This document shows positions 3,697 through 60,261 of a DNA stretch of 64,000 nt, in pieces; the stretch's first letter is position 1, and each line of letters begins with the position of its first letter. The stretch covers positions 62,001-126,000 of the forward strand of contig NIVC01002533.1 of the NCBI GenBank assembly GCA_002269645.1, written 5' to 3'. A model generated the notes under the pieces. The model made no database searches. It had not been told where the DNA came from and saw only the letters and a program-made list of their open reading frames with translations. Source of the stretch: Macrostomum lignano (Eukaryota). The position numbers and the translations under genes are program-made.

Positions 3697-3962
<266 letters not shown>

Positions 3963-3991
3963 TCACTAAAGCCATGGAGACAGGCACTCAC

Positions 3992-40400: not shown

Positions 40401-40676
40401 AGAAATTGTTGTGATTAGCGACGGCCTTGGCGGCTGGTGGGAAGGCTACCTGCGAAGGGACCCGGCGCAGAGGGGCATTTTCCCCGCTAACTTTGTCACC
40501 GAGAGGGCCGGCTCGGCTGCTTCCGGTGCGTGCTAGAGATGCTTGTGGCTTGTTTCGTCTGTGTGCCTGTCTGTCTGTGTCTGTGTGCCTGTCTGTCTGT
40601 CTGTCTGTGTCTGTGTGCCTGTCTGTGTGTCTGTCTGTGTCTGTGTGCCTGTCTGTCTGTGTCTGTGTGCCTGTCG

Positions 40677-40714
<38 letters not shown>

Positions 40715-40911
40715 GTGCCTGTCTGTCTGTCTGTCTGTCTGTCTGTGTGCCTGTCTGTCTGTCTGTCTGTGTCTGTGTGCCTGTCTGTCTGTCTGTCTGT
40801 CTGTCTGTGTGCCTGTCTGTCTGTCTGTCTGTGTCTGTGTGCCTGTCTGTCTGTCTGTCTGTGTCTGTGTGCCTGTCTGTCTGTCTGCCTGTCTGTCTGT
40901 GTCTGTGTGCC

Positions 40912-40961
<50 letters not shown>

Positions 40962-40989
40962 CCTGCCTGTCTGTCTGTCTGTCTGTCTA

Positions 40990-41032
<43 letters not shown>

Positions 41033-41087
41033 GCCTGCCTGCCTGTCTGTCTGTCAGTGTGTCTGACTGTCTGCCTGTCTGCCTGCC

Positions 41088-41130
<43 letters not shown>

Positions 41131-41140
41131 GTGCCTGTCG

Positions 41141-41190
<50 letters not shown>

Positions 41191-41200
41191 GTGCCTGTCG

Positions 41201-41256
<56 letters not shown>

Positions 41257-44200
41257 CTGTGTGTCTGGAAAAACCTGGACCTCTCTCCCCTATACTGCTT
41301 TTATTTCCTGTCGCACAAAATTCTTTGTATTCAAAATTCAAAATTCTTGAAACGCATAAAATTCTTATATCATCAATATTTTAGGCGCCGCGGCCGCCAC
41401 ATCTGACCCGTTCGGCGACGCGTCGGCGACCAGCGCCGCAGCAGATCCGTTCGCCGACGCCGCCTCCGCCTTCGACTCGGCGCCCAGCTCCGTATTCGAT
41501 CAGCAGCCTCAGCAACAGCCTCAGCAACAGCCTCAGCAGCAGCCTCAGCAGCAGCAAGAAATCGCCATAGCAACCGCCCCATTCGAAGCCGGCGGCGAGG
41601 GCCAGCTGTCGCTCCGAGTCGGCATGCGAATCGTAGTTAAAAAGAAGCCGGCCAGCGGCTGGTGGAACGGCGAAGTGGTTGAGAACGGCGTCAAACGTAT
41701 CGGCTGGTTCCCAGCTTCCTATACTAAATTGGAACAACCCTCGGTTGCTAACGACCAGCGACCGGCATCCAGACAGAGCGTCACCTCCAATCAGTCCATG
41801 CCTACCAGCGCCGCGCCCGTGGCCTCAGCTGCTCCCCAGGATCGGTTAAAGAAATCCTCAGTTCATACCGCTGGAGCCGCCTCCGTGTCCGCCTCCACCC
41901 CGGACCTGTTCGCCTCGGCTGGTAAGAAAGCCGCTACGCCTACATTATCAGGCTCCATGTCCGCTCAGCAGCAGCCCACGGCGGCGTTGTCAATGGCAAC
42001 CAGCGATGACGCTCTATCGTCTAGTTATAACAAAGCTCCATCGTCTAGCGTTGAACGAGTGGTTGCTAAGTATCGCTATCAGGCTCGAAATGACGACGAG
42101 TTGACGTTTGAAAAAGGAACAATTATCACGGTGAGTAGTTTGTAAGGCTAATTATTGTTTTGCAAATCCACTGTTTGTTCACGTGTTGTGTTCTTTATTA
42201 ATCCCACTTTATTATGCTTCAATCTTATAATCCATTTTTATGTAGATTTTGCCTATGTTGATTGAGTTCATCAAAAAAATGCTAGGCCATAAAGGTGTGA
42301 CGTTTTCGGAGTGAGATTTAGACATTTAGAGTGACAATTCATTGCAAGACTAAGATCATTTTCGGAGTGCTGTATAATTTTATTTTTTAGAGTGACATTC
42401 TGGAATTGACATTTTCAGAGTGACATTATGGGAGTGCCATTTCCAGAGTGACATTATGGGAGTGCCATTTCCAGAGTGACATTATGGAAGTGCCATTTTT
42501 AGAGTGACATTATGGGAGTGTCATTCCTAGAGTGACACTATGGAAGTGCCATTTCTAGAGTGACATTATGGGAGTGCCATTTCTAGAGTGACATGGGAGT
42601 GCCATTTTCAGAGTGACATTATAGGAGTGCTATTTCCAGAGTGACATTATGGGAGTGCCATTTTTAGAGTGACATTATGGGAGTGCCATTTTTAGAGTGA
42701 CATTATGGGAGTGCCATTTTCAGAGTGACATTTTGGGAGTGAAATTTTTGGAGTTATAGAAGTATACAGAGTGGAGAATTAATTTGGAGTGACATTTTGG
42801 GAGTGAAATTTTTGGAGTTATAGAAGTATACAGAGTGGAGAATTAATTTGGAGTGACATTTTTTTCAAGTTTCAACATTGGCACCTATTATTGATTTATG
42901 GTCGAGCCACAGCCAGTTTAAAATTTCATAATTTCAATTTTATTATCCTAGCTGCTAATATACTGCAGGATGTACTTTTTATAGTTGATTTTAGTAAACT
43001 GTAAAATTAAATTCAACTGTACCTTGGCAGATGAAATGTGTATATTTTATCCTAGAACTGTATCCCCCACTCATTTGCAGGGGAATGATCATGAGAAGGA
43101 TTAATTAATTCTCTATATATCAAAAGCTACAAATCATATCTTTTGATTGTTAAAACATTCGATTAATTTATATTTCAATGACAATTTTGATTGATTTTAA
43201 TTAATCATTCACTCTCTTAGAATTATAATAATCAAATAGGGTGCTTTTTAAATCATATTCAATTTATATATTCGACGATAACATTATTTAGTTAAATATA
43301 TTTATAATATCACTACTTTATGAAAACTGATACTCTAATAGGCACAAAAATACAACGCAGGATAGAGTATCATTCTAATAAATGTTTATAGATATTCATA
43401 TCTTCAAATATGCTTCATTTTATTGACGATTTTCAATTATTTAGCGCCACCCTACCAGACTCTCCAGTGGGGTTATGCCACCCTCCCAGACTCTCCAGTG
43501 GGGTTATGCCACCCTCCCAGACTCTCCAGTGGGGTTATGCCACCCTCCCAGACTCTCCAGTGGGGTTATGCCACCCTCCCAGACTCTCCAGTGGGGTTAT
43601 GCCACCCTCCCAGACTCTCCAGTGGGGTTATGCCACCCTCCCAGACTCTCCAGTGGGGTTATGCCACCCTCCCAGACTCTCCAATGGGGTTATGCCACCC
43701 TCCCAGACTCTCCAGTGGGGTTATGCCACTCTCCCAGACTCTCCAGTGGGGTTATGCCACCCTCCCAGACTCTCCAGTGGGGTTATGCCACTCTCCTAGA
43801 CTCTCCAGTGGGGTTATGCCACCCTCCCAGACTCTCCAATGGGGTTATGCCACCCTCCCAGACTCTCCAATGGGGTTATGCCACCCTCCCAGACTCTCCA
43901 GTGGGGTTATGCCACTCTCCCAGAATCTCCAGTGGGGTTATGCCACTCTCCCAGAATCTCCAGTGGGGTTATGCCACTCTCCCAGACTCTCCAGTGGGGT
44001 TATCCCACTCTCCCAGACTCTCCAGTGGGGTTATGCCACCCTCCCAGACTCTCCAGTGGGGTTATGCCACCCTCCCAGACTCTCCAGTGGGGTTATGCCA
44101 CTCTCCCAGACTCTCCAGTGGGGTTATGCCACCCTCCCAGACTCTCCAGTGGGGTTATGCCACTCTCCTAGACTCTCCAGTGGGGTTATGCCACCCTCCC

Positions 44201-47200
44201 AGACTCTCCAATGGGGTTATGCCACCCTCCCAGACTCTCCAATGGGGTTATGCCACCCTCCCAGACTCTCCAGTGGGGTTATGTCACCCTCCCAGACTCT
44301 CCAGTGGGGTTATGGCACCCTTCCTGACCATCCAGTGTGGTTATGCCACCCTCCCAGACTCTACAGTGGGGTTACGTCACCCTCCCAGACTCTCCAGTGG
44401 GGTTATGCCACCCTCCCAGACTCTCCAGTGGGGTTATGCCACCCTCCCAGACCCTCCAGTGGGGTTATGCCACTCTCCCAGACTCTCCAGTGGGGCTATG
44501 CCACCCTTCCTGACCCTCCAGTGGGGTTATGCCACTCTCCCAGACTCTCCAGTGGGGTTATGCCACCCTCCCAGACTCTCTAGTGTGGTTATGCCACCCT
44601 CCCAGACTCTCCAGTGGGGTTATGCCACCCTCCCAGACTCTCCAGTGGGGTTATGCCACTCTCCCAGACTCTCCAGTGGGGTTATGCCACCCTCCTAGAC
44701 TCTCCAGTGGGGTTATGCCAATATGTAGCACTGACTAATGAGTAATAATATATAAGAGCGGGATTCTAAATGAATTTTCTATATTAAGCTGCTAAGCCAA
44801 AGCCAATTTTTGCTAAAGTCATTATCAATTTTAGAGTATTTTTATTATTATCTTTCTTGTACATACCATTATTTTATATGATTCATTTGACTCGCTTAGC
44901 AAAATTAATTAAACAGTAGTATGTTAGGTACATCTGATTCTAAACATGATTAAATGGCTGGCTGTGTTAGACTTTTAATTACTTTTAGTAAAGATTTTTT
45001 GATAGTAGTCGCGTAGATTAGGATATTGATCAAAGGATTTTTATAATTTCGACGTTTTTTACTTTCTTCATTATGTTTTCACCCTAATGTCAACAATAGT
45101 GCAAGTTGTGTGCATGATAGATAGCGTTATGTTTTTAGAATTTCATTTCATAGCATCAAGTTTTTTATATTTAAAATTTGCTTTCAATTTACGTAAATAA
45201 GCAATAACGATTTCTGTTAATCTGCAGAACTTTTTCCTTATCAATACAAAATTTTTCGCAGAAATTTCATTACGTCACAATTGTTTTTTCGCTGTCTTCT
45301 GATTCTTACCGGCGCGAAAATTCCATGACATCGCATGTCTGATTTTTTTCTTAAGGGGAGAAATTTTGTAGACAAAGGAGAGATTGGATAGATAGACAAG
45401 GAAGAAATTGGGTAGATAGACAAGGGAGAGATTGGGTAGATACACAAGGGAGAGATTAGGTAGATAGACAAGGGAGAGATTGGGTAGATAGACAAGTAAG
45501 AGATTGGGTAGATAGACAAGGAAGAGATTGGGTAGACAGACAAGTAAAAGATTGGGTAGATAGACAAGTAAGAGATTGGGTAGACAGACAAGGGAGAGAT
45601 TGGGTAGATAGACAAGGAAGAGATTGGGTAGACAGACAAGGGAGAGATTGGGTAGATAGACAAGGGAGAGATTAGGTAGATAGACAAGGGAGAGATTAGG
45701 TAGATAGACAAGGAAGAGAATGGGTAGATAGACAAAGAAGAGATTGGGTAGACAGACAAGGGAGAGATTGGGTAGATAGACAAGGAAGAGATTGGGTAGA
45801 TAGACAAGGGAGAGATTAGGTAGATAGACAAAGAAGAGATTGGGTAGATAGACAAGGAAGAGATTGGGTAGATAGACAAGGGAGAGATTAGGTAGATAGA
45901 CAAAGAAGAGATTGGGTAGACAGACAAGGAAGAGATTGGGTAGATAGACAAGGAAGAGATTGGGTAGACAGACAAGGGAGAGATTAGGTAGATAGACAAG
46001 GAGAGATTAGGTAGATAGACAAGGGAGAGATTGGGTAGACAGACAAGGGAGAGATTAGGTAGATAGACAAGGAGAGATTAGGTAGATAGACAAGGGAGAG
46101 ATTGGGTAGACAGACAAGGGAGAGATTAGGTAGATAGACAAGGGAGAGATTGGGTAGATAGACAAGGAAGAGATTGGGTAGACAGACAAGGGAGAGATTA
46201 GGTAGATAGACAAGGAGAGATTAGGTAGATAGACAAGGGAGAGATTGGGTAGACAGACAAGGGAGAGATTAGGTAGATAGACAAGGGAGACATTGGGTAG
46301 ATAGACAAGGAAGAGATTGGGTAGACAGACAAGGGAGAGATTAGGTAGATAGACAAGGAGAGATTAGGTAGATAGACAAGGGAGAGATTGGGTAGACAGA
46401 CAAGGGAGAGATTAGGTAGATAGACAAGGGAGACATTGGGTAGATAGACAAGGGAGAGATTGGGTAGATAGACAAGGGAGAGATTAGGTAGATAGACAAG
46501 GGAGACATTGGGTAGATGACAAGGAAGAGATTGGGAGTTGGAGCTGACAGGAAGTATACTAAAATTAGAGAAAGTCCCAGAAAAACGGCCGCATTGCCCC
46601 TAGCAACCAAGCCTTAGCAACAAGTAAATAAGCTATTCATTTGATCCAATCCTACCTGTCTTGCCCAGGTGATCTCCAAAGACGAGCCAGACTGGCACAG
46701 GGGCAGGACGGCTAGCCTACGCGAAGGCCTCTTCCCTGTAAATTACGTTGAACCGCTGCCTCAGCAGGAGCCAAATCGCCAGATGGTGGTCAACGAGTTG
46801 ACTAACAGCGAGAATACCTATTACAACGATCTGTTGGAGGTTTGGAATAAATTTCACGAGCCAATGCTAGAATCTGGACTGCTGACGCAGGACCAGCTGG
46901 ATGCCATCTTTCTGAATTGGACCGACCTGATGAACTGCTCCTACAGTCTGCTCATGGCTTTGAAGGTGAGCTGCTTGTTGTTGCGTTGCTTTTTAATGGG
47001 GAAATCTTTATGGGTTATCGTGTCTGCATAGATTATCGTGTCTATATAGATTATCGTGTGTCTGTGTGAATTATCGTGTGTCTGTATGGATTATCGTGTG
47101 TCTGGATGGATTATCGTGTGTCTGTGTGGATTATCCTGTTTTTTATGGATTATCGTATGTCTGTGTGGATTATCCTGTTTTTTATGCATTATCATGTGTT

Positions 47201-50200
47201 TGTGTGGATTATCGTGTGTCTATATAGATTATCATGTGTCTGTATAGATTATCGTGTGTCTGGATGCATTATTGTGTGTCTATATGGATTATCGTGTGTC
47301 TGTATAGATTATCGTGTGTCTGTATGGATTATCGTGTGTCTGTATGGATTACCGTGTGTCTGTATGGATTATCGTGTGTCTGTATGGATTATCGTGTGTC
47401 TGTATAGATTATCGTGTGTCTATATAGATTATCGTGTGTCTGTATGGATTATCGTGTGTCTGTATAGATTATCGTGTGTCTGTATAGATTATCGTGTGTC
47501 TGTATGGATTATCGTGTGTCTGTATAGATTATCGTGTGTCTATATAGATTATCGTGTGTCTATATGGATTATCGTGTGTCTGTATAGATTATCGTGTGTC
47601 TGTATGGATTATCGTGTGTCTGTATGGATTATCGTGTGTCTATATAGATTATCGTGTGTCTGTATGGATTATCGTGTGTCTGTATTGATTATCGTGTGTC
47701 TGTATGGATTATCGTGTGTCTGTATGGATTATCGTGTGTCTGTATGGATTTTCGTGTGTCTGTATGGATTATCGTGTGTCTGTATGGATTATCATGTGTC
47801 TGTATGGATTATCGTGTGTCTGTATGGATTATCATGTGTCTGTATAGATTTTACCAAACTATACAAACTTGATCAGGTACGCAAAGAGGGCGGCACAGAC
47901 GCCATCGGTGACATCATGCTGCAGCACCTGCCCCAGCTCACCTGCTACGTCAGATTCTGCGGCAGGCAGAGCGCGGCTACTCAACTGCTCACTCAACGGA
48001 TTAACTCCGTGCCCGAGCTCGCCCAACTAGTTCGCCACTGCGAGCAGCAGACCTCTAGCGGCAAGCTGATGGGTTTAATTCAATATTTTGTTAAGCCTAT
48101 GCAAAGAATCACTCGCTATCCGCTGCTGATTGAGAAGCTGCTCAAAGCTACGCCCGAGTCGCATCCGGACAGGGGCAGTCTGCAGGAGGCTCTGGATGAG
48201 GCTAAGAAGCTGTGCCAGACTGTCAATGAGAGCGTGCGAGAGACTGAGAACTCTGGCCGCTTGGAGTGGTGCCAGGTGAGTGCGGGGCCTTGCTGGTCTG
48301 GTGAGTGAGTGACTGAGTCACTGAGTGAGGGAGCGAGTGAGTGAGTGAGTGAATGAGGGAGCGAGTGAGTGAGTGAGGGAGCGATTGAGTGAATGAGGGA
48401 GCGAGTGAGTGAATGAGGGAGCGAGTGAGTGAATGAGGGAGCGAGTGAGTGAATGAGGGAGCGAGTGAGTGAATGAGGGAGGATTGAGTGAGTGAATGAA
48501 TGAGGGAGCGAGTGAGTGAATGAGGGAGCGAGTGAGTGAATGAGGGAGCGAGTGAGTGAATGAGGGAGCGAGTTAGTGAGTAAAGCAGGGAGCGAGTGAG
48601 TGAGTGAGTGAATGAATGAGGGAGCGAGTGAGTGAGTGAGTGAATGAGGGAGCGAGTGAGTGAGTGAATGAAGGAGCGAGTAAGTGAGTGAATGAGGGAG
48701 GATTGAGTGAGTGAATGAGGGAGCGAGTGAGTGAATGAGGGAGGATTGAGTGAGTGAATGAATGAGGGAGCGAGTGAGTGAATAAGGGAGCGAGTTAGTG
48801 AGTAAAGCAGGGAGCGAGTGAGTGAGTGAATGAATGAGGGAGCGAGTGAGTGAGTGAGTGAATGAGGGAGCGAGTGAGTGAGTGAATGAGGGAGCGAGTA
48901 AGTGAGTGAATGAGGGAGGATTGAGTGAGTGAATGAATGAGGGAGCGAGTGAGTGAGTGAGTGAATGAGGGAGCGAGTGAGTGAGTGAATGAGGGAGCGA
49001 GTAAGTGAGTGAATGAGGGAGGATTGAGTGAGTGAATGAATGAGGGAGCGAGTGAGTGAATGAGGGAGCGAGTGAGTGAATGAGGGAGGATTGAGTGAGT
49101 GAATGAATGAGGTAGCGGAATGAGGGAGCGAGTTAGTGAGTGAATGAAGTAGCGACTAGTAACACTTGCTCATAGTTTGACTGACAGATTAAGCAGATCT
49201 GCATTCATCTATTCTCGAAAACAAACCAAACTCCCAGGAGCACGTGATCTGCGAAGGCCTGTCGGAGAAGCTGGTGTTCAACTCGCAGACCAACTGCCTC
49301 GGCCAGCGCCGCCTAGTGCACTGGGGCACCCTGTTCAAGCACAAGGGCGGCAAAGAGCTTGTGGTGTTTTTATTCAACGATTTCCTACTGCTAACAGTGC
49401 CAGTCTTCAACACCCAGGGCCGGCCGTTTGTGTTCCCCTCGCTGGCTCTGGACGGCAATGCCGCGTCAGCTTCAGAAGACGATCAACTGGCCAACAGTCA
49501 GAAGCAGAAATACCGAATGTACAAGAGGCCGATTATACTGAACGATCTGATGACTGTACCAGAGCCAGATCGGGACAGCGGGACGGAGCCGCCGCTGCTC
49601 TGCATTCGGGTGCTGCCTAACGAGGACTGGGTGTTCCGCTGTCAGAGTGCTCAAGATCGGGACAGGTGGAAAGATCGACTAACCAAAACTGCTAAGGAAT
49701 ATCACAATGCTACTGGTGAGGAGTGCTATGTGTGTTAAAGTAACAGTGGATAAATTTGCTTTTTTTGTCTTGTGCAATACATCTTACTTATGTATATTTA
49801 GTTTTTCCGTATCACTTGCTTCACTGCTCAGGACCGTGATACCATTTTTTTCATAAATTAAATCGTATCTCCTTATCATCTGTCTCAGTTCACATTATTT
49901 TTCCTTTCCTTTCTTCTCTTCTCTTTTCCCCATCGCTTCACGCCTCTCATCATTGCCTCTTATCCCTTATCCCCTCTTATCCCTTCTTATCCCTATCATT
50001 CCCTCTTATCCCTTCTTATCCCCTCTCATCCCCTCTCATCCCCTCTTATCCCCTCTTATCCCCTCTCATCCCTTATCATTCCCTCTTATCTCTTCTTATC
50101 CCCTCTCATTCCTTCGCATCCTTTTTTATACCCTCATCCCTTCGTATCCCCTTTTGTCCCTTTCATCCCTTTGCACCCCCTTTTATCCCCTCTCATCCCT

Positions 50201-53200
50201 CCGCATGTCCCTTTCATCCCTTTGCACCCCCTTTTGTCCCTCTCATCCCTTTGCATCCCATTTTATCCCCTTTCATCCCTTCGCATCCCCTCTCATTCAC
50301 TCATGCCCTTGCATCTCATCCCCTCTTATCCCCTTTCATACCCTCTGTTGTTGTTAAACGAGGCTGGGTAGCCAGGGGCTCCCGCGGATCAGCCCAGAGA
50401 AGGGCTCTGCTTCATCTGCTTCATCTGATAGGGGGCACATCTACCAGTGGGCATATAGCCCGAGCAGCCCAGATTGGGACCTGACGTCATGGCCAGGGAG
50501 AGAGCACTAATTGGGGCTACTAGCTCAAGCCTATGGACTAAGACACCGCCAACCCATAAGTGGAATCAAGGACGGTGCTAAGACCGAGTCCACCCAAGCC
50601 ACCACCCAGCAGACAAATCCCGGGAGTGCGCAAAAGAAAGATTGGAAAAGCATTGGATACTACTGAAAGCGGTCCGAGAGCGGGGAAACCCCGAAGTCTA
50701 CGGAAATGGCTTGCATTAATTGGAGTGAGTCTGGGAGGCTTGTTTCCGAGGGCGAGTCTCCTGTCCAGCTCTAATTTGGAGCCCAGGCCAAGGGGTCGGG
50801 GAGGGGCACAAGGAGCAAGAGGACCCGGACTCAGCCGGTATCCCAGATTCGGGACGAACATCAACCCCAGGACTCCAATCCACTGTCAGAGATGAGAGCC
50901 GAGACACAAGGGCAGGGAACTTCCAGAGGAGCCAGCAGGATGGACCGGGCAGGGAGGGCAGAGCTCATAACTCCAGAATTTTGGCGCGGCATTCAAAGGC
51001 CTTACATTAATAAAAACACAAAGATAAAGCACAAGAGGGGATAAAAACAATGGGAGGAGCACCTGAACCCTAAACCCGGGGCTAACTAACTAACTAACTA
51101 AATAAGTAAATCCGGCGCCTCAGCCTATTGAATAAGGCTCTTACGCCACTAGAAAGATATAGGTTCCAAGTTGGGAGTGTACGTATGTACACTAGGTTCC
51201 TAAGCTAGGGAGAGTACTGTGTAAAGGGCAAGTAACAAATCAAAAACCTCCCCGGGGGACAGTGACAGCGGTACGACGCACCAGGGGAAGCCCGTGCCCA
51301 AAACACCAGGTTGGATAGACCCCTTGCCTATTAGGGTTGGCCCGAAGGCCGAGAGCCTTGGCTACCATGCTGGGGCCGACCGCCCACCACCCCCGGGTAC
51401 TCAAGCCAAACGTACATAAACCTCCCCGGGGCCAGAGGGGGTTGAGTGAACCATTCAGGGAAGCCCGTGCCTTCTCCTGGGTTAGATAGGCCAAAACACC
51501 GGTCATAAGACCGCCCCCACGGCCGTGGCGACCCGAAGGAGCCTCCCCCCCAACTAAACCCCGGGTACTCTTGCCAGACAGTCTCTTATCTTTGAAGCGG
51601 CAGGAGGGCTAATCGCCGGGACTATTTCACCCTTTGCTTCGCCATCCCGCCATTTCTATAGTGACCGTGCCAACGGTCTCGTCCTGCTCAGACTCAGTCC
51701 TGGTTCTGGCACACTCCAGCTTTAATAGGGTCGCTGGCTGTACGCTCAGAGGGCACTCCGAGGGGGACCGTCAGAGCACCAACTGGTACAGGTATAAGCC
51801 TGCCTTCCTATACAGCTACCCACAGCCCTTCCTGATCCACTATTACCCTCCAACCCAGCCTACTCACTCATTACAAGCTTTCAGCCAGGCAGAGACAAGT
51901 TTCACAGGGGTACTGCGGTTAGGCGCCTCTATGCGAGACAAAACCAGCACCTGAACCCTAAACCCGGGGCTCAGCCTCAGGGCTGGCATGCTAACTGGGC
52001 TCTACCGTACACCTTTGTGAATGGTCATTTTCTTTCCTGTAGGGCGGGTGCGACCGGGGAGCTCAAGTCCCGTTCTAAGCCACACTGCAGTCCAGAGTAC
52101 GCACTCACTCCAGGTACACCCCCACCTAACCAAGGCCCAGGGCCGAAATAATTGGAAAGAAAAAATAGGGTTATTTTTAGATGAGTACACATGCTTGGGC
52201 GCAACCTTGGGATTCACTCGGCCGTTTCTATTGGCGGCACACACATGTGGGTCGCTATTGGACGGAATAGTAGTCACGTGACTGCTCTCAGCCAATAGCG
52301 ACTTACATGTGTGTGTTGCCAGTAGAAGCGGCCGGGTGATTCCCAAAGTTGCGCATGTACAGTCAGTGACTGTACATACGTACATACGTACATGCGTACT
52401 GTACATCACCTCCGGTGAGGACTCTAATTTGATTGGGCTAGCGAGTGCTAGGCCAATTGGATTGCGCACAACCCCGAGAAATGCCGCCAGAGAGGCAGCC
52501 AGGGTAAAAACAGTCAGAGACCGTCTTTACCGTCATACCCTCTTTCCCTCTCATCCCCTCTTCCCCTCTTCCCCTCTCACTCCCTCATTCGTTCCCTTTT
52601 CTTATATCCTTAAAGTCTTTGTGTGTATCCTGAGCTTCGCATAGCAAGTAGTGCATTGCAGTTTTTTGCATATACAGTATTATTTACGGGATTTTGTTGG
52701 AAAAAATTTGCTTCTAAAACAGCGCTTTGCACTGCCTAGTAACAAGTGACCAATCGTATTTATTTTGTTGATTTGACTTGTTTTCTCTTTTTTTAATTCC
52801 AGGAAGATTTGGTAAGACATGTTGGCAGTTTGCTTAGCTCTTTGGCACTAGGAAATTCAAACTTTTCATTTAAATTCAAATTTCTATAATTCTACTTGGT
52901 TAAGTTGAAGTCATTTTTATTAATTTTTACAGATTTGAACGATTTTAATTTTATAAATTTATAAATCCAAAAGTTCAGATAAGATTATAAATTATTAGAG
53001 ACTTGTGATGAATTGTTAATTATGCTCTCCGTGATTTATTTGATGCTTTTGTCCTTTTCCTGTCCGCATCTTTGTTAGACTTTCTGACACGCTTTTGTCC
53101 TATCAGAATCCGTGAAATTTATCTATAAATCTGTAAATTTATGACAAAATCTTCTAGATTTTCTCAACACAGTCTTGAGTTTCTTAGCACAAATCCTGGT

Positions 53201-56200
53201 GCTCACATATGACTGCTTGTGATCCCATTCTTCTCCAAATGGGATTTCAAGTAGCTCCCATATGAATTATAATCACATTCTTCCCCAAATGGGATTTCAA
53301 TCAGTAGCTCCCATCTGACTGCTTGTGATCCCATTCTTCCCCAAATGGGATTTCAATCAGTAGCTCCAATATGAATGCTTGTGATCCCATTCTTCCCCAA
53401 ATGGGATTTCAATCAGTAGCTCCAATATGAATGCTTGTGATCCCATTCTTCCCCAAATGGGATTTCAATCAGTAGCTCCCAAATGACTGCTTGTGATCCC
53501 ATTCTTCCCCAAATGGGATTTCAATCAGTAGCTCCAATATGAATGCTTGTGATCCCATTCTTCTCCAAATGGGATTTCAAGTAGCTCCCATATGAATTAT
53601 AATCACATTCTTCCCCAAATGGGATTTCAATCAGTAGCTCCCATCTGACTGCTTGTGATCCCATTCTTCCCCAAATGGGATTTTGATCAGTAGCTCCCAT
53701 CTGACTGCTTGTGATCCCATTCTTCCCCAAATGGGATTTCAATCAGTAGCTCCCATCTGACTGCTTGTGATCCCATTCTTCCCCAAATGGGATTTTGATC
53801 AGTAGCTCCCATATGAATGCTTGTGATCCCATTCTTCCCCGAATGGGATTTCAATCAGTAGCTCCCATATGACTGTTTGTGATCCCATTCTTCCCCAAAT
53901 GGGATTTCAATCAGTAGCTCCCATATGAATGCTTGTGATCCCATTCTTCCCCAAATGGGATTTCAATCAGTAGCTCCCATATGAATGCTTGTGATCCCAT
54001 TCTTCCCCGAATGGGATTTCAATCAGTAGCTCACATCTGACTGCTTGTGATCCCATTCTTCCCCAAATGGGATTTCAATCAGTAGCTCCCATATGACTGC
54101 TTGTGATCCCATTCTTCCCCGAATGGGATTTCAATCAGTAGCTCCAATATGACTGCTTGTGATCCCATTCTTCCCCAAATAGGATTTCAATCAGTAGCTC
54201 CAATATGACTGCTTGTGATCCCATTCTTCCCCAAATAGGATTTCAATCAGTAGCTCCCATATGACTGCTTGTGATCCCATTCTTCCCCAAATAGGATTTC
54301 AATCAGTAGCTCCCATATGACTGCTTGTGATCCCATTCTTCCCCGAATGGGATTTCAATCAGTAGTTCCAATATGAATGCTTGTGATCCCATTCTTCTCC
54401 AAATAGGATTTCAATCAGTAGCTCCCATCTGACTGCTTGTGATCCCATTCTTCCCCGAATGGGATTTCAATCAGTAGCTCCAATATGAATGCTTGTGATC
54501 CCATTCTTCCCCGAATGGGATTTCAATCAGTAGCTCCCATCTGACTGCTTGTGATCCCATTCTTCTCCAAATAGGATTTCAATCAGTAGCTCCCATATGA
54601 CTGCTTGTGATCCCATTCTTCCCCGAATGGGATTTCAATCAGTAGCTCCAATATGAATGCTTGTGATCCCATTCTTCTCCAAATGGGATTTCAATCAGTA
54701 GCTCCCATATGACTGCTTGTGATCCCATTCTTCCCCAAATGGGATTTTAATCAGTAGCTCCCATCTGACTGCTTGTGATCCCATTCTTCCCCAAATGGGA
54801 TTTCAATCAGTAGCTCCAATATGAATGCTTGTGATTCCATTCTTCTCCAAATGGGATTTCAAGTAGCTCCCATATGAATTATAATCACATTCTTCCCCAA
54901 ATGGGATTTCAATCAGTAGCTCCCATATGACTGCTTGTGATCCCATTCTTCCCCAAATGGGATTTTGATCAGTAGCTCCCATCTGACTGCTTGTGATCCC
55001 ATTCTTCTCCAAATGGGATTTCAATCAGTAGCTCCCATCTGACTGCTTGTGATTCCATTCTTCTCCAAATGGGATTTCAATCAGTAGCTCCCATATGACT
55101 GCTTGTGATCCCATTCTTCCCCGAATGGGATTTCAATCAGTAGCTCCCATATGACTGCTTGTGATCCCATTCTTCTCCAAATAGGATTTCAATCAGTAGC
55201 TCCCATATGACTGCTTGTGATCCCATTCTTCCCGAATGGGATTTCAATCAGTAGCTCCAATATGAATGCTTGTGATCCCATTCTTCTCCAAATAGGATTT
55301 CAATCAGTAGCTCCCATATGACTGCTTGTGATCCCATTCTTCCCGAATGGGATTTCAATCAGTAGCTCCAATATGAATGCTTGTGATCCCATTCTTCCCC
55401 AAATAGGATTTCAATCAGTAGCTCCCATATGACTGCTTGTGATCCCATTCTTCTCCAAATAGGATTTCAATCAGTAGCTCCCATATGACTGCTTGTGATC
55501 CCATTCTTCCCCGAATGGGATTTCAATCAGTAGCTCCAATATGAATGCTTGTGATCCCATTCTTCTCCAAATAGGATTTCAATCAGTAGCTCCCATATGA
55601 CTGCTTGTGATCCCATTCTTCCCCAAATGGGATTTTAATCAGTAGCTCCCATCTGACTGCTTGTGATCCCATTCTTCCCCAAATGGGATTTCAATCAGTA
55701 GCTCCCATATGAATTATAATCACATTCTTCCCCAAATGGGATTTCAATCAGTAGCTCCCATCTGACTGCTTGTGATCCCATTCTTCCCCAAATGGGATTT
55801 CAATCAGTAGCTCCCATCTGACTGCTTGTGATCCCATTCTTCTCCAAATGGGATTTCAATCAGTAGCTCCCATATGACTGCTTGTGATCCCATTCTTCTC
55901 CAAATGGGATTTCAATCAGTAGCTCCCATCTGACTGCTTGTGATTCCATTCTTCTCCAAATGGGATTTCAATCAGTAGCTCCCATATGACTGCTTGTGAT
56001 CCCATTCTTCCCCGAATGGGATTTCAATCAGTAGCTCCCATATGACTGCTTGTGATCCCATTCTTCTCCAAATAGGATTTCAATCAGTAGCTCCCATATG
56101 ACTGCTTGTGATCCCATTCTTCCCCGAATGGGATTTCAATCAGTAGCTCCAATATGAATGCTTGTGATCCCATTCTTCTCCAAATAGGATTTCAATCAGT

Positions 56201-59200
56201 AGCTCCCATATGACTGCTTGTGATCCCATTCTTCCCCGAATGGGATTTCAATCAGTAGCTCCAATATGAATGCTTGTGATCCCATTCTTCCCCAAATAGG
56301 ATTTCAATCAGTAGCTCCCATATGACTGCTTGTGATCCCATTCTTCTCCAAATAGGATTTCAATCAGTAGCTCCCATATGACTGCTTGTGATCCCATTCT
56401 TCCCCGAATGGGATTTCAATCAGTAGCTCCAATATGAATGCTTGTGATCCCATTCTTCTCCAAATAGGATTTCAATCAGTAGCTCCCATATGACTGCTTG
56501 TGATCCCATTCTTCCCCAAATGGGATTTTAATCAGTAGCTCCCATCTGACTGCTTGTGATCCCATTCTTCCCCAAATGGGATTTCAATCAGTAGCTCCCA
56601 TATGAATTATAATCACATTCTTCCCCAAATGGGATTTCAATCAGTAGCTCCCATCTGACTGCTTGTGATCCCATTCTTCCCCAAATGGGATTTCAATCAG
56701 TAGCTCCCATCTGACTGCTTGTGATCCCATTCTTCTCCAAATGGGATTTCAATCAGTAGCTCCCATATGACTGCTTGTGATCCCATTCTTCTCCAAATGG
56801 GATTTCAATCAGTAGCTCCCATCTGACTGACTGCTTGTGATGCCCCATTCTTCCCCAAATGGGATTTTAAGCAATAGCTCCCATAAGTGATTTATCAAAA
56901 AAATCGATAAAATATATCCCTAATAATTAGCCCACTTTATGCTGTTCGTGCATTCTCTGCTTTAATTTTTAATTGCACCACAACAGCTATGCAATGCGCA
57001 CTACGGTGTGGTTATAGCATTTGTTTGTTTTACTTATTTTTACGTGGTGTCGTTATAGATTCCTAAATCAATATTTTCTGTCTATTAGTAGTATAATAGT
57101 AGTATTATAATCATATTAGTGCTATTATTAAATAGCGACAAGCTTCTATACTGTTGTTTGTTCAACCTGTCTACATGTAGAACGCATGGCTAGAAGGCGC
57201 CTGCATCGAGTAAGTTGCTATCAGCTGATAATTTTAATGAGATGCTCATTGCAATATCATTATTAACACTTTACTTAAAGTTCTTAGCAGCAAATTTAAA
57301 ATTTGAAGCTATAGTATAGTAATGATAATTGTCAAAGACAATGGCTCTTGTTATTTTGTTTAAAAGTGTACGATGTACTTTTAATCTCAAAGTAATCACG
57401 TGTGCAATATAGCTTTTTGCCTTTATATAACCGCCTAAAATTTGCTGCTAATATCAGTAAATAAAGTGTTAATCAAATTCTAATTTTTATTTTGACTCCT
57501 TAAGGACGCTAATATAAAGTAAAATCGTTAACAGTGTCTTTTTCAATTCCATTGCTTGTTCTTTTAAGTCTACATTCGACAATTGGCTGTTCTATCATAA
57601 CCCTACCCCCCAACCCTACCCAACCCTACCCTAACCCTACACACCTACCCCTAACCTTACCCTAACCCAAACCAATATTGTCGACAGTGAGTAGTCATCA
57701 AGTAGCTATTTCTGTTCAATTCACTTATTTACTGCTTTAAAAGTACCAACAAAAATGGTTTGTATTTCATTTCATATTTTTAGAGAAATTGGCTATCGAA
57801 GGTAATAAAAGACGCAGTTTATTATAAATTTCAATAATGATTGAATTATTGAGACTGGGCAACTTCATAGTCTCCACTATATTCATTGTGTCTCAAATAA
57901 CCAGTTATTACGTTTTCCTTTAATTGCCCTTGATAACATAGGCGTCGGCATAGTGTGACTAATTGGCACTAAATTTTATATTATCGTCTTTAACCAATTT
58001 TAATCTCTCGCTTTCAACGATAAACTTTTTTGGCTGGCATAGTTTTAATTTATTAATTAGTTCCATTAATCCAGTGCGGTTCTACTAAAGGTTTAAATTA
58101 ATGAACACTATAGATATTAAACCAAACTATGGTTTTAGAAGGGGGCCGTAGCCCAGTGGTCCAGCAGGCGCTCTGATTTGCCAGCGGCCCAGGCTTGATT
58201 CCAAGTGCAGTCACATTAATTTGAGGCTAAATTGGAATCTCGGCTTGGCTCAGCTCGTGCAATTAACGGCCTTGAGGGCCAACCCCAAGGCACAGTGAAG
58301 TGTACATGCCTAGGGCCGCTGTACACTCCTGTGTGAGTGTGTGCCTGTGCGTATGACTGCTCAGGAGAGTCGGTGGAATGGGCAGTAATGGGCAGAAATG
58401 GGCGGTTGTGTGACAATGTCATTTGAAGTGCGCCAGGTGCACACAGCCCCTGCCTCTGATGAAAAATGGTTATTTATATAAACCGTAGCGCGGTATACGC
58501 ACTACTTATTATTGGCAGTAGTTTTGCAGTTGGCTTAATTAAAACGCATTATTGTAACTCGTCCGCTGCGTCGCTGCACTCTAGCCTCTTTCGCTATAGT
58601 AAAAAACATTGCGTTCGCTGATTGGCTGGGGTGTTTATCTCTCTCTGTCCCGCCTCCATCATTCTACCCTTCTCCTCATTCCTATTGGCTGTGCAGCGTC
58701 GTAGCCTGCCCCCTCCCCCTAGCCAATATAGTTGATTGGCTACAATTACACTAACGAAAAGTCCATTCATTAGGCTTGAATATGATTTTAAAACAGAAGA
58801 TTTTTATTATAAATTCTGGTATTTTAATAAATTTTATTCATATAAAAAACCGATTATAAAATTACTATTAGGGTGATGGTTTTCTTCAACTGTTAAACCT
58901 TGAATTATTTCTTAAATGTATAGCCATTCTGATTGAATCTGATTGCATGTGCTTTAAAGTTTTAATCAGATTGTTCAGAAAGCAACTTATACGGTATCGT
59001 TGATAAAAACATTCGTAATTGTAGTAACTCGTATAAAAGTCGATATTTAGCTTAATAATAAGAGCAACAGACGCTTGCATCAGCCAAGCAAAGTTATTAT
59101 AATTAATTATTATTTAATAATATTGTTTATTTCTTTTGTTGGCGTATAAGTATGAACTCAATAATGCTTGTATTCCTAATGAACCAGTGGGTGTCTTAAA

Positions 59201-60261
59201 TTTTAACAATATTACTTGAGCTGTTTGACTTTATAGGCCAACTCAAGAGTTTTTTTAAACAAAACTTTCCACTTGTACACAGGGCCTCCCATCATAGAGC
59301 CCCACCCACTCGCCCTAGACAAAGCCTACCCTACTCCTAAACAAACAACACCTACCCTCAAATATACGCAGGGCCTTCCCTCAAAAGCCCACTCCACTCC
59401 CCCCTAGACAATTCCTGCCCCCAGATGTACGCAAGGCCTCCCGTCATAAACCCCCACCCCACTCCCCCTAGACAATTACTACCCCCAGATGTACGCAGGA
59501 CCTCTCCACATAACCCCCCGCCCCATTTCCCCTATTCAATTACTGCCCCCAGATGTAACGCAGGGCCTCCCTTCATAAACCCCCGCCCCACTCCCCCTAG
59601 TCAATTACTGCCCCCAGATGTACGCAGGGCCTCCCCTCATAAAACCCCCGCCCCACTCCCCCTAGAGTGAGCCAATCAGCGCCAATTGTTACACAGAGAG
59701 CCTCTCGCACAAGCCTCTACTCCCTCTACAGTTATCTTCCTTATCTTCCAACCACAGCAAACACGCCTAAACTTACTCAGTTTTTATTGTGCTAGAACCC
59801 ACCCTTTCCCCAATAAAAACTACGCAGAAAACAACCAACGCAGCCGGGCCTTCAGCCGGGAGAGCGTCGGTCGGCTACTACTAACAGTAGAGCAGGGCTA
59901 CTCATTGAAGGTTGGCAATCTGGGCGGTGACAACAAAAGCGACCCGTACGCCGAAGTTTCACTAGGCTCGCAACGCCAGTGCACCGAAGTGATTAGAGCT
60001 ACGCTAAATCCGGTGTGGAACAAAGCAATGCAATTTCACATTGCCGACCCCAACGAGGACGTCCTATCCATCACTGTGTACGATCGTGATTTCTTTTCGC
60101 CGAACACTTTCCTAGGCCGAGCCGAACTGCGCATTGCCGATGTGGCCAAAGACTTGGCTAAAGCGAAGCACGGGCCAATCACAAAACGATTGCGATTGTC
60201 CGAGGTTGACACTGGCGAGGTCCAGATTAAGCTGGACTTGCAGATGCACGGCTCGCATTGA
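34250..60261 (+). CDS. ITSN1: Intersectin, long form (EH-EH-coiled coil-5xSH3-DH-PH-C2), 12 exons
   Basis: Exons: 34250-34486, 35140-35442, 36004-36435, 37149-37559, 37883-38043, 38759-39499, 39888-40525, 41385-42130, 46669-46965, 47877-48275, 49238-49715, 59828-60261, all GT-AG with consistent phases. Domain motifs match intersectin throughout (e.g. [55 protein letters not shown]). The ITSN1 versus ITSN2 distinction is vertebrate-specific. Confidence 0.95.
34500..35072. repeat. G-rich ~40-bp degenerate minisatellite
   Basis: ctctttgaagttctaggcgggagtgggg...gcggcgg units. Confidence 0.85.
35140..35442 (+). CDS. ITSN1: Intersectin exon 2 (linker, start of EH2)
   Basis: [10 protein letters not shown]...DWSVP...[24 protein letters not shown]. 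Confidence 0.9.
35545..35990. repeat. ~31-bp degenerate minisatellite (CTAACACCCCCTCTCTAACCAGTTGGTATGT)
   Basis: Intronic. Confidence 0.8.
36004..36435 (+). CDS. ITSN1: Intersectin exon 3 (end of EH2, start of coiled coil)
   Basis: [23 protein letters not shown]...[21 protein letters not shown]. Confidence 0.92.
36548..37050. repeat. 20-bp minisatellite (CATAAGGTCAGAAAGGGTCA)n
   Basis: Intronic. Confidence 0.9.
37149..37559 (+). CDS. ITSN1: Intersectin exon 4 (KERLQ coiled coil)
   Basis: [23 protein letters not shown]...; cacag| and CAG|gtgcgt. Confidence 0.9.
37883..38043 (+). CDS. ITSN1: Intersectin exon 5 (coiled coil)
   Basis: ttccag|GTT GAT ... GCC AA|gtaatt; below the ORF-track length cut-off; phase 0 to 2. 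Confidence 0.85.
38195..38718. repeat. 24-bp minisatellite (CAGATTAGATTGCAGATTGCTACA)n
   Basis: About 21 units. Confidence 0.95.
38759..39499 (+). CDS. ITSN1: Intersectin exon 6 (coiled-coil end, start of SH3A)
   Basis: [21 protein letters not shown]...SWLFAR. Confidence 0.9.
39535..39805. repeat. 20-bp minisatellite (GTACTCAGATAGACACTTAG)n
   Basis: Intronic. Confidence 0.9.
39888..40525 (+). CDS. ITSN1: Intersectin exon 7 (end of SH3A, SH3B, SH3C)
   Basis: GLVPRNYV; ELSLTIG...WLFG...GWFPSGCV; [14 protein letters not shown]...WWEG...GIFPANFV. Confidence 0.92.
40556..41265. repeat. (TGTC)n compound microsatellite
   Basis: Direct reading. Confidence 0.95.
41385..42130 (+). CDS. ITSN1: Intersectin exon 8 (SH3D, start of SH3E)
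   Basis: [18 protein letters not shown]...GWWNGE...IGWFPASY; [19 protein letters not shown]. Confidence 0.92.
42395..42860. repeat. 28-bp minisatellite (GAGTGACATTATGGGAGTGCCATTTYYA) plus a ~64-bp duplication
   Basis: Intronic. Confidence 0.85.
43449..44719. repeat. 31-bp minisatellite (CCACCCTCCCAGACTCTCCAGTGGGGTTATG)n
   Basis: About 41 units; the 31-aa-periodic ORFs in all three frames reflect the 31-bp unit. Confidence 0.97.
45370..46530. repeat. 24-bp purine-rich minisatellite (GTAGATAGACAAGGGAGAGATTGG)n
   Basis: About 48 units. Confidence 0.97.
46669..46965 (+). CDS. ITSN1: Intersectin exon 9 (end of SH3E, start of DH)
   Basis: DEPDWHRG...[10 protein letters not shown]...[16 protein letters not shown]...IFLNW. 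Confidence 0.92.
47022..47850. repeat. 20-bp minisatellite (GATTATCGTGTGTCTGTATG)n
   Basis: About 41 units. Confidence 0.97.
47877..48275 (+). CDS. ITSN1: Intersectin exon 10 (DH)
   Basis: IGDIML...YVRFC...[26 protein letters not shown]...[16 protein letters not shown]. Confidence 0.95.
48300..49150. repeat. (GAGT)-based ~20-bp minisatellite (GAATGAGGGAGCGAGTGAGT)n
   Basis: Intronic. Confidence 0.95.
49238..49715 (+). CDS. ITSN1: Intersectin exon 11 (PH)
   Basis: [22 protein letters not shown]...LFNDFLLLT...[11 protein letters not shown]...RDRWKDRL; ACT G|gtgagg. Confidence 0.95.
49950..50346. repeat. C/T-rich (ATCCCCTCTY)n tract, resumes at 52533-52590 after the insertion
   Basis: Same repeat on both sides of the 50347-52532 insertion. 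Confidence 0.85.
51084..51945 (-). mobile_element. Nested retroposon-like insertion B (862 bp)
   Basis: Exact 26-bp direct repeat agcacctgaaccctaaacccggggct at 51058-51083 and 51946-51971; (AACT)4 run, i.e. a minus-strand (TTAG)n-type tail, abuts the left copy. Confidence 0.65.
52199..52354. repeat. ~156-bp imperfect palindrome centred on agtcacgtgact
   Basis: Arms gcgcaaccttgggattcactcggccgtttctattggcggcacacacatgtgggtcgctattgg and ccaatagcgacttacatgtgtgtgttgccagtagaagcggccgggtgattcccaaagttgcgc are reverse complements with scattered mismatches. Confidence 0.85.
52803..52811 (+). CDS. ITSN1: Candidate 9-nt intersectin microexon (GAAGATTTG)
   Basis: Long polypyrimidine tract ...ttttctctttttttaattccag|gaagatttg|gtaaga; frame-preserving in the phase-1 last intron (adds GRF). 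Confidence 0.45.
53201..56885. repeat. 56-bp satellite array (~66 units), each unit with an internal inverted repeat
   Basis: Unit tgactgcttgtgatcccattcttccccaaatgggatttcaatcagtagctcccata; atcccatt/aatgggat stem. Confidence 0.97.
57598..57673. repeat. Degenerate CCCTAA/CCCTAC (telomere-like) short tract
   Basis: ccctaccc...ctaaccctac...ccctaacc. Confidence 0.5.
58141..58465 (+). mobile_element. SINE family A, full length
   Basis: gggggccgtagcccagtggt...ggcttgattccaagtgcagtca...cctgcctct; colinear with 26616-26981 apart from indels. Confidence 0.85.
59278..59670. repeat. ~60-bp C-rich degenerate minisatellite
   Basis: cccactccccctag...cccccagatgtacgcagggcctccc units. Confidence 0.8.
59828..60261 (+). 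CDS. ITSN1: Intersectin last exon (C2 domain)
   Basis: tacgcag|AA AAC; [11 protein letters not shown]...[11 protein letters not shown]...TLNPVWN...[17 protein letters not shown]...[11 protein letters not shown], stop TGA. Confidence 0.95.

Follow-up and report, generated by a model that had tools for sequence, protein, structure and literature searches.

A spliced leader-derived 5′ terminus on a non-coding retroposon in an intersectin-like gene of Macrostomum lignano

SLACS elements reside in spliced leader (SL) exons, where the SL promoter drives their transcription, so that their RNA begins with the first SL bases. The composite SVA retroposons, assembled from hexamer, Alu-like, VNTR and SINE-R modules, carry a poly(A) tail and depend on L1 for their mobility; 5′-transducing subfamilies exist, and elements of this type can gain foreign 5′ sequence from upstream transcription or splicing. 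Crocodilian SINEU elements are SINEs with heads derived from U1 and U2 snRNA, which have been attributed to template switching with subsequent inheritance (PMC4494074). NeSL is an SL-exon-specific non-LTR lineage whose targets include spliced leader exons (PMC4640811). The trypanosomatid retroposons L1Tc, ingi, NARTc and SIDER carry Pr77, an internal Pol II promoter to which TBP and SNAP50 bind, both of which are SL RNA gene promoter factors (PMC8190864). In parasitic flatworms, 597 candidate SL loci were discarded as partial leaders associated with LTR or LINE elements and were read as trans-spliced transposable element transcripts (PMC12582326). The SL RNA gene of M. lignano is a 109-bp unit, present in eight copies in the deduplicated assembly (PMC8629364), and the published Macrostomum SL consensus is CCGTAAAGACGGTCTCTTACTGCGAAGACTCAATTTATTGCATG (PMC5173321). 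Here we describe a retroposon of M. lignano that begins with a slightly modified version of the 5′ half of this leader.

Structure and genomic context of the insertion

In the 64-kb stretch of M. lignano DNA analyzed here (the window), a CT-rich minisatellite is interrupted at positions 50347–52532 by a clean 2186-bp insertion. It is directly flanked by two perfectly matching copies of an 11-bp target site duplication (TSD), TCATACCCTCT, at 50336–50346 and 52533–52543 of the plus strand. These are the only occurrences of the 11-mer in the window, and two or more matches were obtained in 0 of 100 shuffles. When the insert and one TSD copy are removed in silico, a single continuous period-10 CT-rich array extends over the junction (TRF). 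At its 3′ end the insertion bears a short microsatellite tail of three units only, (AAC)3 (50347–50355, minus strand; the plus strand begins GTTGTTGTT). A poly(A) tail is absent from the insertion, and self-BLAST of the insert found no terminal repeats (TIR or LTR). The split CT-rich tract with its 11-bp TSD and the minus-strand (AAC)n tail, all noted in a preliminary description of this DNA, are thus confirmed. A second occurrence of AACAACAAC, the only other one in the window, lies at 28201 and is surrounded by unrelated AT-rich DNA; it was rejected as a related site.

A six-frame Pfam scan of the insertion detected no protein domain at E ≤ 1 and no coding capacity for a reverse transcriptase (RT) or an endonuclease. 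Neither of the two longest ORFs (155 and 174 aa) has a homologue among 5.8 billion clusters or 1.84 billion representatives, the latter giving 0 matches for the 174-aa ORF. The previously reported lack of an RT ORF is borne out by these searches. No Rfam family was found in the insertion, and similarity to tRNA, 5S or 7SL was not detected by Rfam at E ≤ 10; a ribozyme-processed 5′ end was rejected, as neither an HDV nor a hammerhead match was obtained. Because the 11-bp TSD is perfect, the minisatellite is restored upon excision, the tail is a microsatellite, and TIR, LTR and protein domains are all lacking, we conclude that 50347–52532 is a non-coding insertion of the target-primed reverse transcription (TPRT) type.

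The 2186 bp were initially taken for a single element, which is incorrect. A second, unrelated retroposon of 862 bp, also non-coding (51084–51945, minus strand), sits inside an outer element that measures 1298 bp without it and carries the SL-like head. The nested retroposon ends in a (TTAG)4.5 tail (51084–51101, minus strand) that abuts the 3′ copy of its own TSD. This 26-bp duplication of outer-element sequence, AGCCCCGGGTTTAGGGTTCAGGTGCT, occupies 51058–51083 (3′ TSD) and 51946–51971 (5′ TSD) on the minus strand, the two copies being identical at 26/26 positions. The nested retroposon contains two diverged tandem units of ~175 bp (~51230–51580), has no Pfam domain and shows no significant similarity to the SL. 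Its identification as a tRNA-SINE was rejected, as no tRNA was found; kinship with the outer part was likewise rejected in view of the lack of significant similarity.

The outer element is thereby divided into a highly structured 5′ part of 587 bp (51946–52532, minus strand) and a non-coding 3′ part of 711 bp (50347–51057, minus strand). Its first 353 nt fold with an energy of −183.7 kcal/mol (z = −12.9), and the fold of its 3′-terminal 74–144 nt is not better than that of shuffled sequences (z −0.7 to −1.5). A long imperfect palindrome (52199–52354; 81% over 158 nt) with arms of ~75 bp contains CCAAT/ATTGG boxes and a central CACGTG. It is more stable on the plus strand than on the minus strand (−126.7 vs. 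−102.9 kcal/mol; 8 vs. 2 G·U pairs), and its match to miRNA-like hairpins is sub-threshold only. BLASTN against the remainder of the window revealed no other copy of the whole insert, the outer part or the nested part. No second copy was found in protein, metagenome, prokaryote-genome or viral-contig collections, leaving one known copy, and neither a partner LINE nor a common 3′ end was found in the collections searched.

The element is intronic and antisense to an intersectin-like, flatworm-like host gene, since a PH-domain exon (49193–49735, plus strand; PH_13, E = 2.3e-38) precedes and a C2-domain exon (59671–60258, plus strand; C2, E = 2.5e-22) follows the same intron. The DH domain of this gene is at 47076–48308. 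An SH3 exon lies at 41360–42142, and 43475–44698 is a tandem-repeat ORF. The window also contains a FAM135/DUF676 exon with best relatives at 53–63% identity; the corresponding NJ tree is only suggestive and compatible with a non-parasitic flatworm.

The spliced leader-derived head and its hairpin

The first 22 nt of the outer element, CGGTAAAGACGGTCTCTGACTG (52511–52532, minus strand), match nt 1–22 of the SL at 20 of 22 positions, 15 of them consecutive; the exceptions are nt 2 (C>G) and nt 18 (T>G). Alignment begins with the first base of the element, so that the start of the element RNA would fall within one base of the SL RNA start, and similarity ends at SL nt 22; beyond this point the local score is 16, compared with 15.3 ± 2.1 for shuffles. 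The preliminary description had given an SL start matching 20/22 at the exact terminus, and comparison with the published consensus (PMC5173321) confirms it. Its further claim that the SL 3′ half is missing, hence that this is no retrocopy of a trans-spliced mRNA, also stands, as nt 23–44, the junction-proximal half, are absent from the element. The head is the sole significant SL match in the window (E = 4e-4), which contains no SL gene. With 2146 of the 4^22 possible sequences lying within two mismatches, the probability of a random match at a fixed position is ~1e-10. The head therefore originates from the SL.

The SL exon is invariant among M. lignano, M. cliftonense, M. hystrix and two environmental SL RNA genes (L001 and L003), which makes the two differences in the head specific to the element. 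The environmental genes came from searches with SGTAAAGACGGTCTCTKACTG: in the metagenome scan, L001 was the sole match and no element head was found; among 185,579 prokaryote genomes, a MAG contained a flatworm SL gene (L003), and two bacterial sequences matched by chance; three viral-contig scans gave no match. Both genes are intact and free of insertions, are 91% alike from −7 to +109, and possess a full SL exon, a GT splice donor, an Sm-like site and 3′ stem-loops. The window and L001 also carry Na/K-ATPase beta genes, which are distant paralogues of each other (28–34% identity). As the element has neither a splice donor nor an Sm site and the similarity stops at nt 22, its classification as a functional SL RNA variant, an SL RNA gene or a pseudogene was rejected.

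The head and the bases following it form a 13-bp hairpin, GGTAAAGACGGTC-TCT-GACTGTTTTTACC (element nt 2–30; 52503–52531, minus strand), as had been proposed earlier. Folding gives 11 Watson–Crick and 2 G·U pairs closing a UCU loop, with ΔG of −16.5 kcal/mol (z = −5.9), a stability equaled in 0 of 200 shuffles; the corresponding plus-strand value is −9.2 kcal/mol. Element bases 23–30 are complementary to nt 2–9, and a random adjoining sequence would provide such an 8-nt complement with an estimated probability of ~1e-4. According to a substitution scan of the 66 possible single substitutions, C2>G stabilizes the hairpin most and T18>G comes second, and as a pair they rank 2/2079 among double substitutions (−16.5 vs. 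−10.5 kcal/mol). Because both departures from the SL are those that best stabilize the hairpin, we propose an inherited and selected head, on a post hoc comparison of two substitutions in one copy. The pattern points to selection acting on the 5′ hairpin rather than to the decay of a dead copy.

The 3′ arm of the hairpin includes a T5 run resembling a Pol III terminator, read from the sequence at element nt 23–27 (52506–52510, minus strand). Given this run and the lack of tRNA, 5S or 7SL similarity, Pol III transcription is disfavored. The SINE label suggested in the preliminary description does not fit an element of 1.3 kb that lacks both an A/B box and a tRNA-like part and contains a T5 run at nt 23–27. 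Among the hallmarks of SINEs, a head from a small RNA gene is present (22 nt only), and a Pol III promoter and a length of roughly <700 bp are not.

Possible origins of the head

We are evenly balanced on the reading that we favor, in which the outer element is a non-autonomous non-LTR retroposon whose SL-derived head was inherited and remodeled. An ORF-less 1.3-kb element would have inserted antisense into the intersectin-like intron by TPRT. Its ancestor would have gained SL nt 1–22 once, either because RT switched templates to SL RNA or because transcription read through from an SL gene. The first route, which has been suggested for SINEU heads, may represent a third origin beyond the two considered in the preliminary description, an SL-RNA-headed SINE-like family and a non-autonomous derivative of an SL-gene-targeting element. 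Two substitutions and the 8-nt complement would then have remodeled the inherited head into the stable 13-bp 5′-terminal hairpin. Its most likely role would be at the 5′ end of a Pol II transcript, which it would define and protect. In Ascaris the SL promoter is intragenic, and the head may also bring such a promoter or a protein-binding element. Mobilization would presumably be provided in trans by a LINE recognizing the 3′ end and the (AAC)n tail.

Tentatively, we extend this reading to a multicopy, Pol II-transcribed, ORF-less Macrostomum family, in which the inherited SL-derived hairpin head, by borrowing an element from within the SL RNA gene, would supply the transcription start, the cap or 5′-end identity; we consider this joint reading possible but doubtful. 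If the head is indeed a family feature, SL RNA is to be added to the known sources of retroposon heads (tRNA, 7SL, 5S, 28S and U1/U2). The question of SINEU-type transcription could be addressed in M. lignano, where transgenesis works (PMC5730564). The hundreds of discarded partial leaders associated with transposable elements in parasitic flatworms may not all be trans-spliced transcripts of such elements, and SL-like heads in repeats can contaminate the annotation of trans-splicing sites based on SL reads.

A one-off chimera seems unlikely to us. It would have formed, at the present retroposition or at a recent ancestral one, when RT, on reaching the 5′ end of the element RNA, jumped into SL RNA or the SL of a trans-spliced mRNA at ~nt 22, leaving a functionless head with differences due to drift or RT errors. 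SL-bearing RNAs are very abundant templates, such a jump predicts exactly the observed arrangement of SL nt 1–N followed by the element, reaching SL nt 1, and a single copy is known; template switching also explains U6/U1/U2–L1 chimeras and SINEU heads (PMC4494074). However, a fresh copy should equal the invariant SL, whereas 2 of 22 positions differ even though the TSDs are intact at 11/11 and 26/26 positions. At 9% divergence, TSDs are estimated to remain intact in ~13% of cases, and age is therefore not sufficient to exclude a chimera. Both differences are those that stabilize the hairpin most, with the pair at rank 2/2079, and the 8 nt after the head complement nt 2–9 (~1e-4 for random sequence, estimated). 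Were the chimera real, it would be an ordinary by-product of reverse transcription beside an abundant RNA.

Distinctly unlikely is descent from a site-specific retrotransposon resident in SL genes, with a master copy located within an SL RNA gene after SL nt 22 and driven by the SL promoter, so that its RNA would begin with SL nt 1–22, the copy described here being off-target. The element starts within one base of the SL RNA start, and such an origin needs no 5′ ribozyme, none having been found. SL-exon-specific non-LTR lineages exist (NeSL, PMC4640811), and co-transcription of R2 with its target is presented as established in work cited in PMC4494074. However, SL-gene-specific retrotransposons encode an RT and a restriction-like endonuclease and occupy a fixed site in the SL gene, whereas the copy at 50347–52532 has neither enzyme and interrupts a CT-rich minisatellite unlike the SL site. 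The window holds no SL gene, the recovered SL RNA genes are intact, though they are only two and from other taxa, and nothing in these observations directly indicates SL-gene targeting. Moreover, the head departs from the SL and looks optimized for the hairpin, which would not be required of a passive flank.

We consider it very improbable that the element is a retrocopy of a trans-spliced retroelement transcript from which SL nt 23–44 were lost later, although the 597 parasitic flatworm loci have been read in this manner (PMC12582326). In trans-splicing it is the SL 3′ end (...TTGCATG) that becomes joined to the body, and the 5′ half is what a 5′ truncation would drop. The element keeps this half and lacks the junction-proximal 22 nt, which requires an exact ad hoc internal deletion; neither a junction of ...ATTGCATG with the body nor poly(A) is present. 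Finally, chance or convergent likeness to the SL, or a diverged SL RNA gene or pseudogene, is barely credible: 20-mers of the head do recur in very large collections (two bacterial matches in 596 Gb) and both the element head and the SL form hairpins, but a match of ~1e-10 probability begins here at an independently defined insertion terminus, and the element has no donor, no Sm site, no similarity past nt 22 and no Rfam match.

Comparison with known systems

SLACS, CZAR and CRE of trypanosomatids and NeSL-1 of nematodes resemble the Macrostomum element in the physical linkage of a retroposon with SL RNA sequence. However, they are autonomous, encode an RT and a restriction-like endonuclease and reside in SL genes, whereas the element is ORF-less and lies in an intronic minisatellite. 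Chimeras of U6, U1 or U2 with pieces of L1, Alu or mRNA likewise combine a small-RNA 5′ part and a retroposon body within one TSD, but these are one-off products identical to the source RNA, and the head described here departs from its source at two hairpin-stabilizing positions. The discarded loci of parasitic flatworms also show a partial SL adjoining LINE or LTR elements; the retained part of the SL and its position are undescribed for them (PMC12582326), whereas our element keeps the 5′ half at its exact terminus, unlike what trans-splicing predicts.

Pr77, too, is a short 5′-terminal module; it is conserved and common to autonomous and non-autonomous trypanosomatid retroposons (PMC8190864). 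However, it is not SL-derived and encodes an HDV-like ribozyme, whereas the element gave no ribozyme match. SVA and other composite Pol II retroposons share with the element a kilobase size, a non-coding and modular structure, a foreign 5′ sequence and mobilization in trans by a LINE, which is predicted in our case. There is no sequence relation between them, and the element has an (AAC)n tail instead of poly(A).

SINEU elements are similarly non-autonomous, derive their head from a gene for a spliceosomal small RNA transcribed by Pol II and have no known internal promoter, and in both cases T-runs speak against Pol III. In contrast to SINEU, the head is here 22 nt of SL RNA remodeled into a hairpin, the body is 1.3 kb rather than <500 bp, and one copy is known. 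To our knowledge, an SL-fragment head has not been described before on such retroposons. If a multicopy family exists, it would be the first class of retroposons headed by SL RNA and would parallel SINEU and, functionally, Pr77.

Two nested retroposons in an intersectin-like gene

Positions 50347–52532 form a discrete insertion bounded by an 11-bp target-site duplication (TSD), since TCATACCCTCT flanks both of its ends and the surrounding CT-rich array is continuous after excision. Its plus-strand junctions read ...CCCTTTCATACCCTCT/GTTGTTGTTAAACGAGG ... GTCTTTACCG/TCATACCCTCTTTCCC...; the 11-mer occurs just twice in the 64-kb window (50336–50346 and 52533–52543), and none of 100 shuffles contained two matches. 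Once 50347–52543 is removed, Tandem Repeats Finder reports a single unbroken period-10 array over the junction. No terminal inverted repeats or long terminal repeats were found in the insertion. The minus strand terminates in (AAC)3, identifying it as the sense strand of a retroposon of the target-primed reverse transcription type. The insertion codes for nothing: a six-frame scan produced no Pfam families at E ≤ 1, the longest ORFs have no homologues in two very large protein libraries, and Rfam searches returned no family at gathering score and, at E ≤ 10, nothing beyond hairpin look-alikes below threshold, with no ribozyme, tRNA, 5S, 7SL or snRNA.

The preliminary description had correctly read the split CT-rich tract, the TSD, the (AAC)n tail and the lack of a reverse transcriptase (RT) ORF; its view of the 2186 bp as one element did not hold, as an 862-bp retroposon is nested in a 1298-bp one. 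A perfect 26-bp direct repeat, AGCCCCGGGTTTAGGGTTCAGGTGCT on the minus strand (51971–51946 and 51083–51058), brackets the 862-bp segment (51084–51945, minus strand), and a (TTAG)4.5 tail at the segment's 3′ end touches the second copy, which marks the segment as a further non-LTR retroposon in the same orientation. It is unrelated to the outer element, with no significant similarity to it or to the spliced leader (SL) RNA. Because this segment is nested, the SL-headed outer element comprises 1298 bp (52532–51946 and 51057–50347). The 26-bp TSD is unusually long and holds a telomere-like GGGTTTAGGGTT motif, and the nested body contains two diverged tandem units of ~175 bp each.

The insertion is intronic and antisense in an intersectin-like gene on the plus strand (34232–60258; EH domains at 34.2 and 36.0 kb, SH3 at 41.4–42.1 and 46.6 kb, DH at 46.8–48.3 kb, PH at 49.2–49.7 kb, C2 at 59.7–60.3 kb), and large satellite arrays adjoin it. 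The same intron carries a 56-bp satellite (53201–56885, ~66 copies, 91% matching, unit GCTCCCATATGACTGCTTGTGATCCCATTCTTCCCCAAATGGGATTTCAATCAGTA), and some 213 units of (GTGA)n make up a long microsatellite (48301–49147) immediately after the DH exon. Further arrays of 4- to 8-bp period lie in inverted orientation 37 kb apart (40457–41250 and 3697–3966); several such arrays give rise to long spurious ORFs, e.g., 43366–44695 and 47070–47800. About 12 degenerate (TAACCC)n units form a short telomere-like tract at an interstitial site (57598–57673), and a Tc1/mariner-type DDE transposase fragment (9604–10110, minus strand; Pfam DDE_3, E = 6e-7) is also present. The window further encodes an ankyrin-repeat protein (3–1127, minus), a FAM135/DUF676 serine esterase (25516–26406, plus) and a two-exon Na/K-ATPase beta subunit (30200–32532, plus). 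The nearest relatives of the FAM135 sequence in public data are 53–63% identical, and in a neighbour-joining tree it falls next to parasitic flatworms, at the end of a long branch. The richness in satellites agrees with what has been described for M. lignano (PMC5730564), and a Macrostomum-type host is argued for mainly by the SL match.

A spliced-leader head at the 5′ terminus

PMC5173321 gives the M. lignano leader as CCGTAAAGACGGTCTCTTACTGCGAAGACTCAATTTATTGCATG, and a later paper used its 35-nt core (PMC8629364). The leader start given in the preliminary description agrees with it: the first 22 nt of the outer element (the head; 52532–52511), CGGTAAAGACGGTCTCTGACTG, are identical to SL nt 1–22 at 20 of 22 positions, 15 of them consecutive, and the alignment begins at the element's first base. 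The match is real: by our arithmetic, it would arise by chance at any one fixed position with a probability of about 1e-10. Similarity ends at nt 22 (local score 16 vs. 15.3 ± 2.1 for shuffles), and the SL 3′ half, as had been noted, is absent from the window. The head is the sole significant SL similarity within the window. On the plus strand of the nested element, antisense to it, AGACAGTCTCTTA (51576–51588) matches SL nt 7–19 at 12/13 positions; with E about 7 this lacks significance and is probably due to chance.

A pattern scan of environmental DNA recovered two genuine SL RNA genes: L001 (617–725 of JGI metagenome contig Ga0302322_100095745) and L003 (1591–1699 of the 3.7-kb contig JAGQZA010000190.1, labelled "MAG: Flavobacteriaceae bacterium HKST-UBA79"). 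The latter is eukaryotic (flatworm) contamination of the bacterial MAG into which it was binned. In both genes a 44-nt exon identical to that of M. lignano precedes GTAAG and two stem-loops with ATTTTTAG between them; with GTAAG as donor and ATTTTTAG as Sm-like site, the L003 gene is complete. The two loci share only the stretch from −7 to +109 (91% identity), and the exon is invariant across five taxa or loci. Their differences are confined to loops and linkers, their upstream flanks are unalignable beyond TCTTTG, and the L001 gene has a Na/K-ATPase beta-like gene 1 kb downstream of it.

Remodelling and origin of the head

Element nt 2–30 fold into the 13-bp hairpin with a UCU loop proposed earlier (dG −16.5 kcal/mol, z = −5.9); the plus-strand equivalent is weaker (−9.2 kcal/mol) because two of the pairs are G·U. 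The four innermost pairs (CGGT/ACTG) are already present in the SL. The stem is extended by bases 23–30 (TTTTTACC), complementary to nt 2–9, and by both non-SL bases, which form the pairs G2–C30 and C14–G18. Every possible change from the true SL was enumerated within the element's context: among 66 single substitutions C2>G is the most stabilising and T18>G the second, and among 2079 double substitutions the observed pair ranks second. Since the SL exon is invariant, both TSDs are intact (11/11 and 26/26) and both changes stabilise the hairpin, a fresh, functionless, decayed SL copy fits the pattern poorly; the test, being post hoc and based on a single sequence, is suggestive of a replicating lineage in which the head evolved and the 5′ hairpin was selected for.

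Three origins each predict SL nt 1–N at the exact 5′ end. The RT may have switched template onto SL RNA, which is how SINEU heads and U6-L1 chimeras are proposed to have arisen (PMC4494074). A second route is read-through from the SL promoter by a master copy sitting inside an SL gene, the situation of SLACS, CRE and NeSL. SL-specific NeSL is documented (PMC4640811). This second route has no direct support here: our element has no RT, its target is non-SL, and SL genes are intact in both recovered loci. A trans-spliced retrocopy with an internal deletion is disfavoured, because the junction-proximal SL half is the missing part.

Whatever the head's origin, its changes optimise the hairpin, which speaks for a module that by now is inherited and functional. 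Most likely it would define and protect the 5′ terminus of an RNA made by Pol II; it may also reuse a promoter or protein-binding site lying within the SL gene. The T5 run at nt 23–27 would terminate Pol III.

The first 353 nt of the outer element show strong folding (z = −12.9), which is largely due to a palindrome at 52199–52354, with arms of about 75 bp and ATTGG/CCAAT boxes around a central CACGTG; no significant structure was found at the 3′ end. As RNA, the palindrome folds to −126.7 kcal/mol on the plus strand vs. −102.9 on the minus (8 vs. 2 G·U pairs). The better-folding strand is antisense to the element and sense to the host pre-mRNA, and the palindrome's miRNA-like hairpin match is sub-threshold only.

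Relation to known elements

The SL-headed insertion is a real feature. A strict SINE is ruled out by the outer element's length and by Pol III criteria, and an SL-specific LINE by the lack of an ORF and the non-SL target. An association of SL with transposable elements is itself not new, because partial leaders beside LINE/LTR elements have been reported from parasitic flatworms, where they were discarded (PMC12582326). New in the literature, as far as we found, is a piece of the SL 5′ half that sits exactly at the terminus and has been turned into a hairpin. In form, the nearest analogue is SINEU, with snRNA-derived heads, probable Pol II transcription and no known promoter; in function, it may be Pr77, a hallmark of trypanosomatid elements to which factors of the SL promoter bind (PMC8190864).
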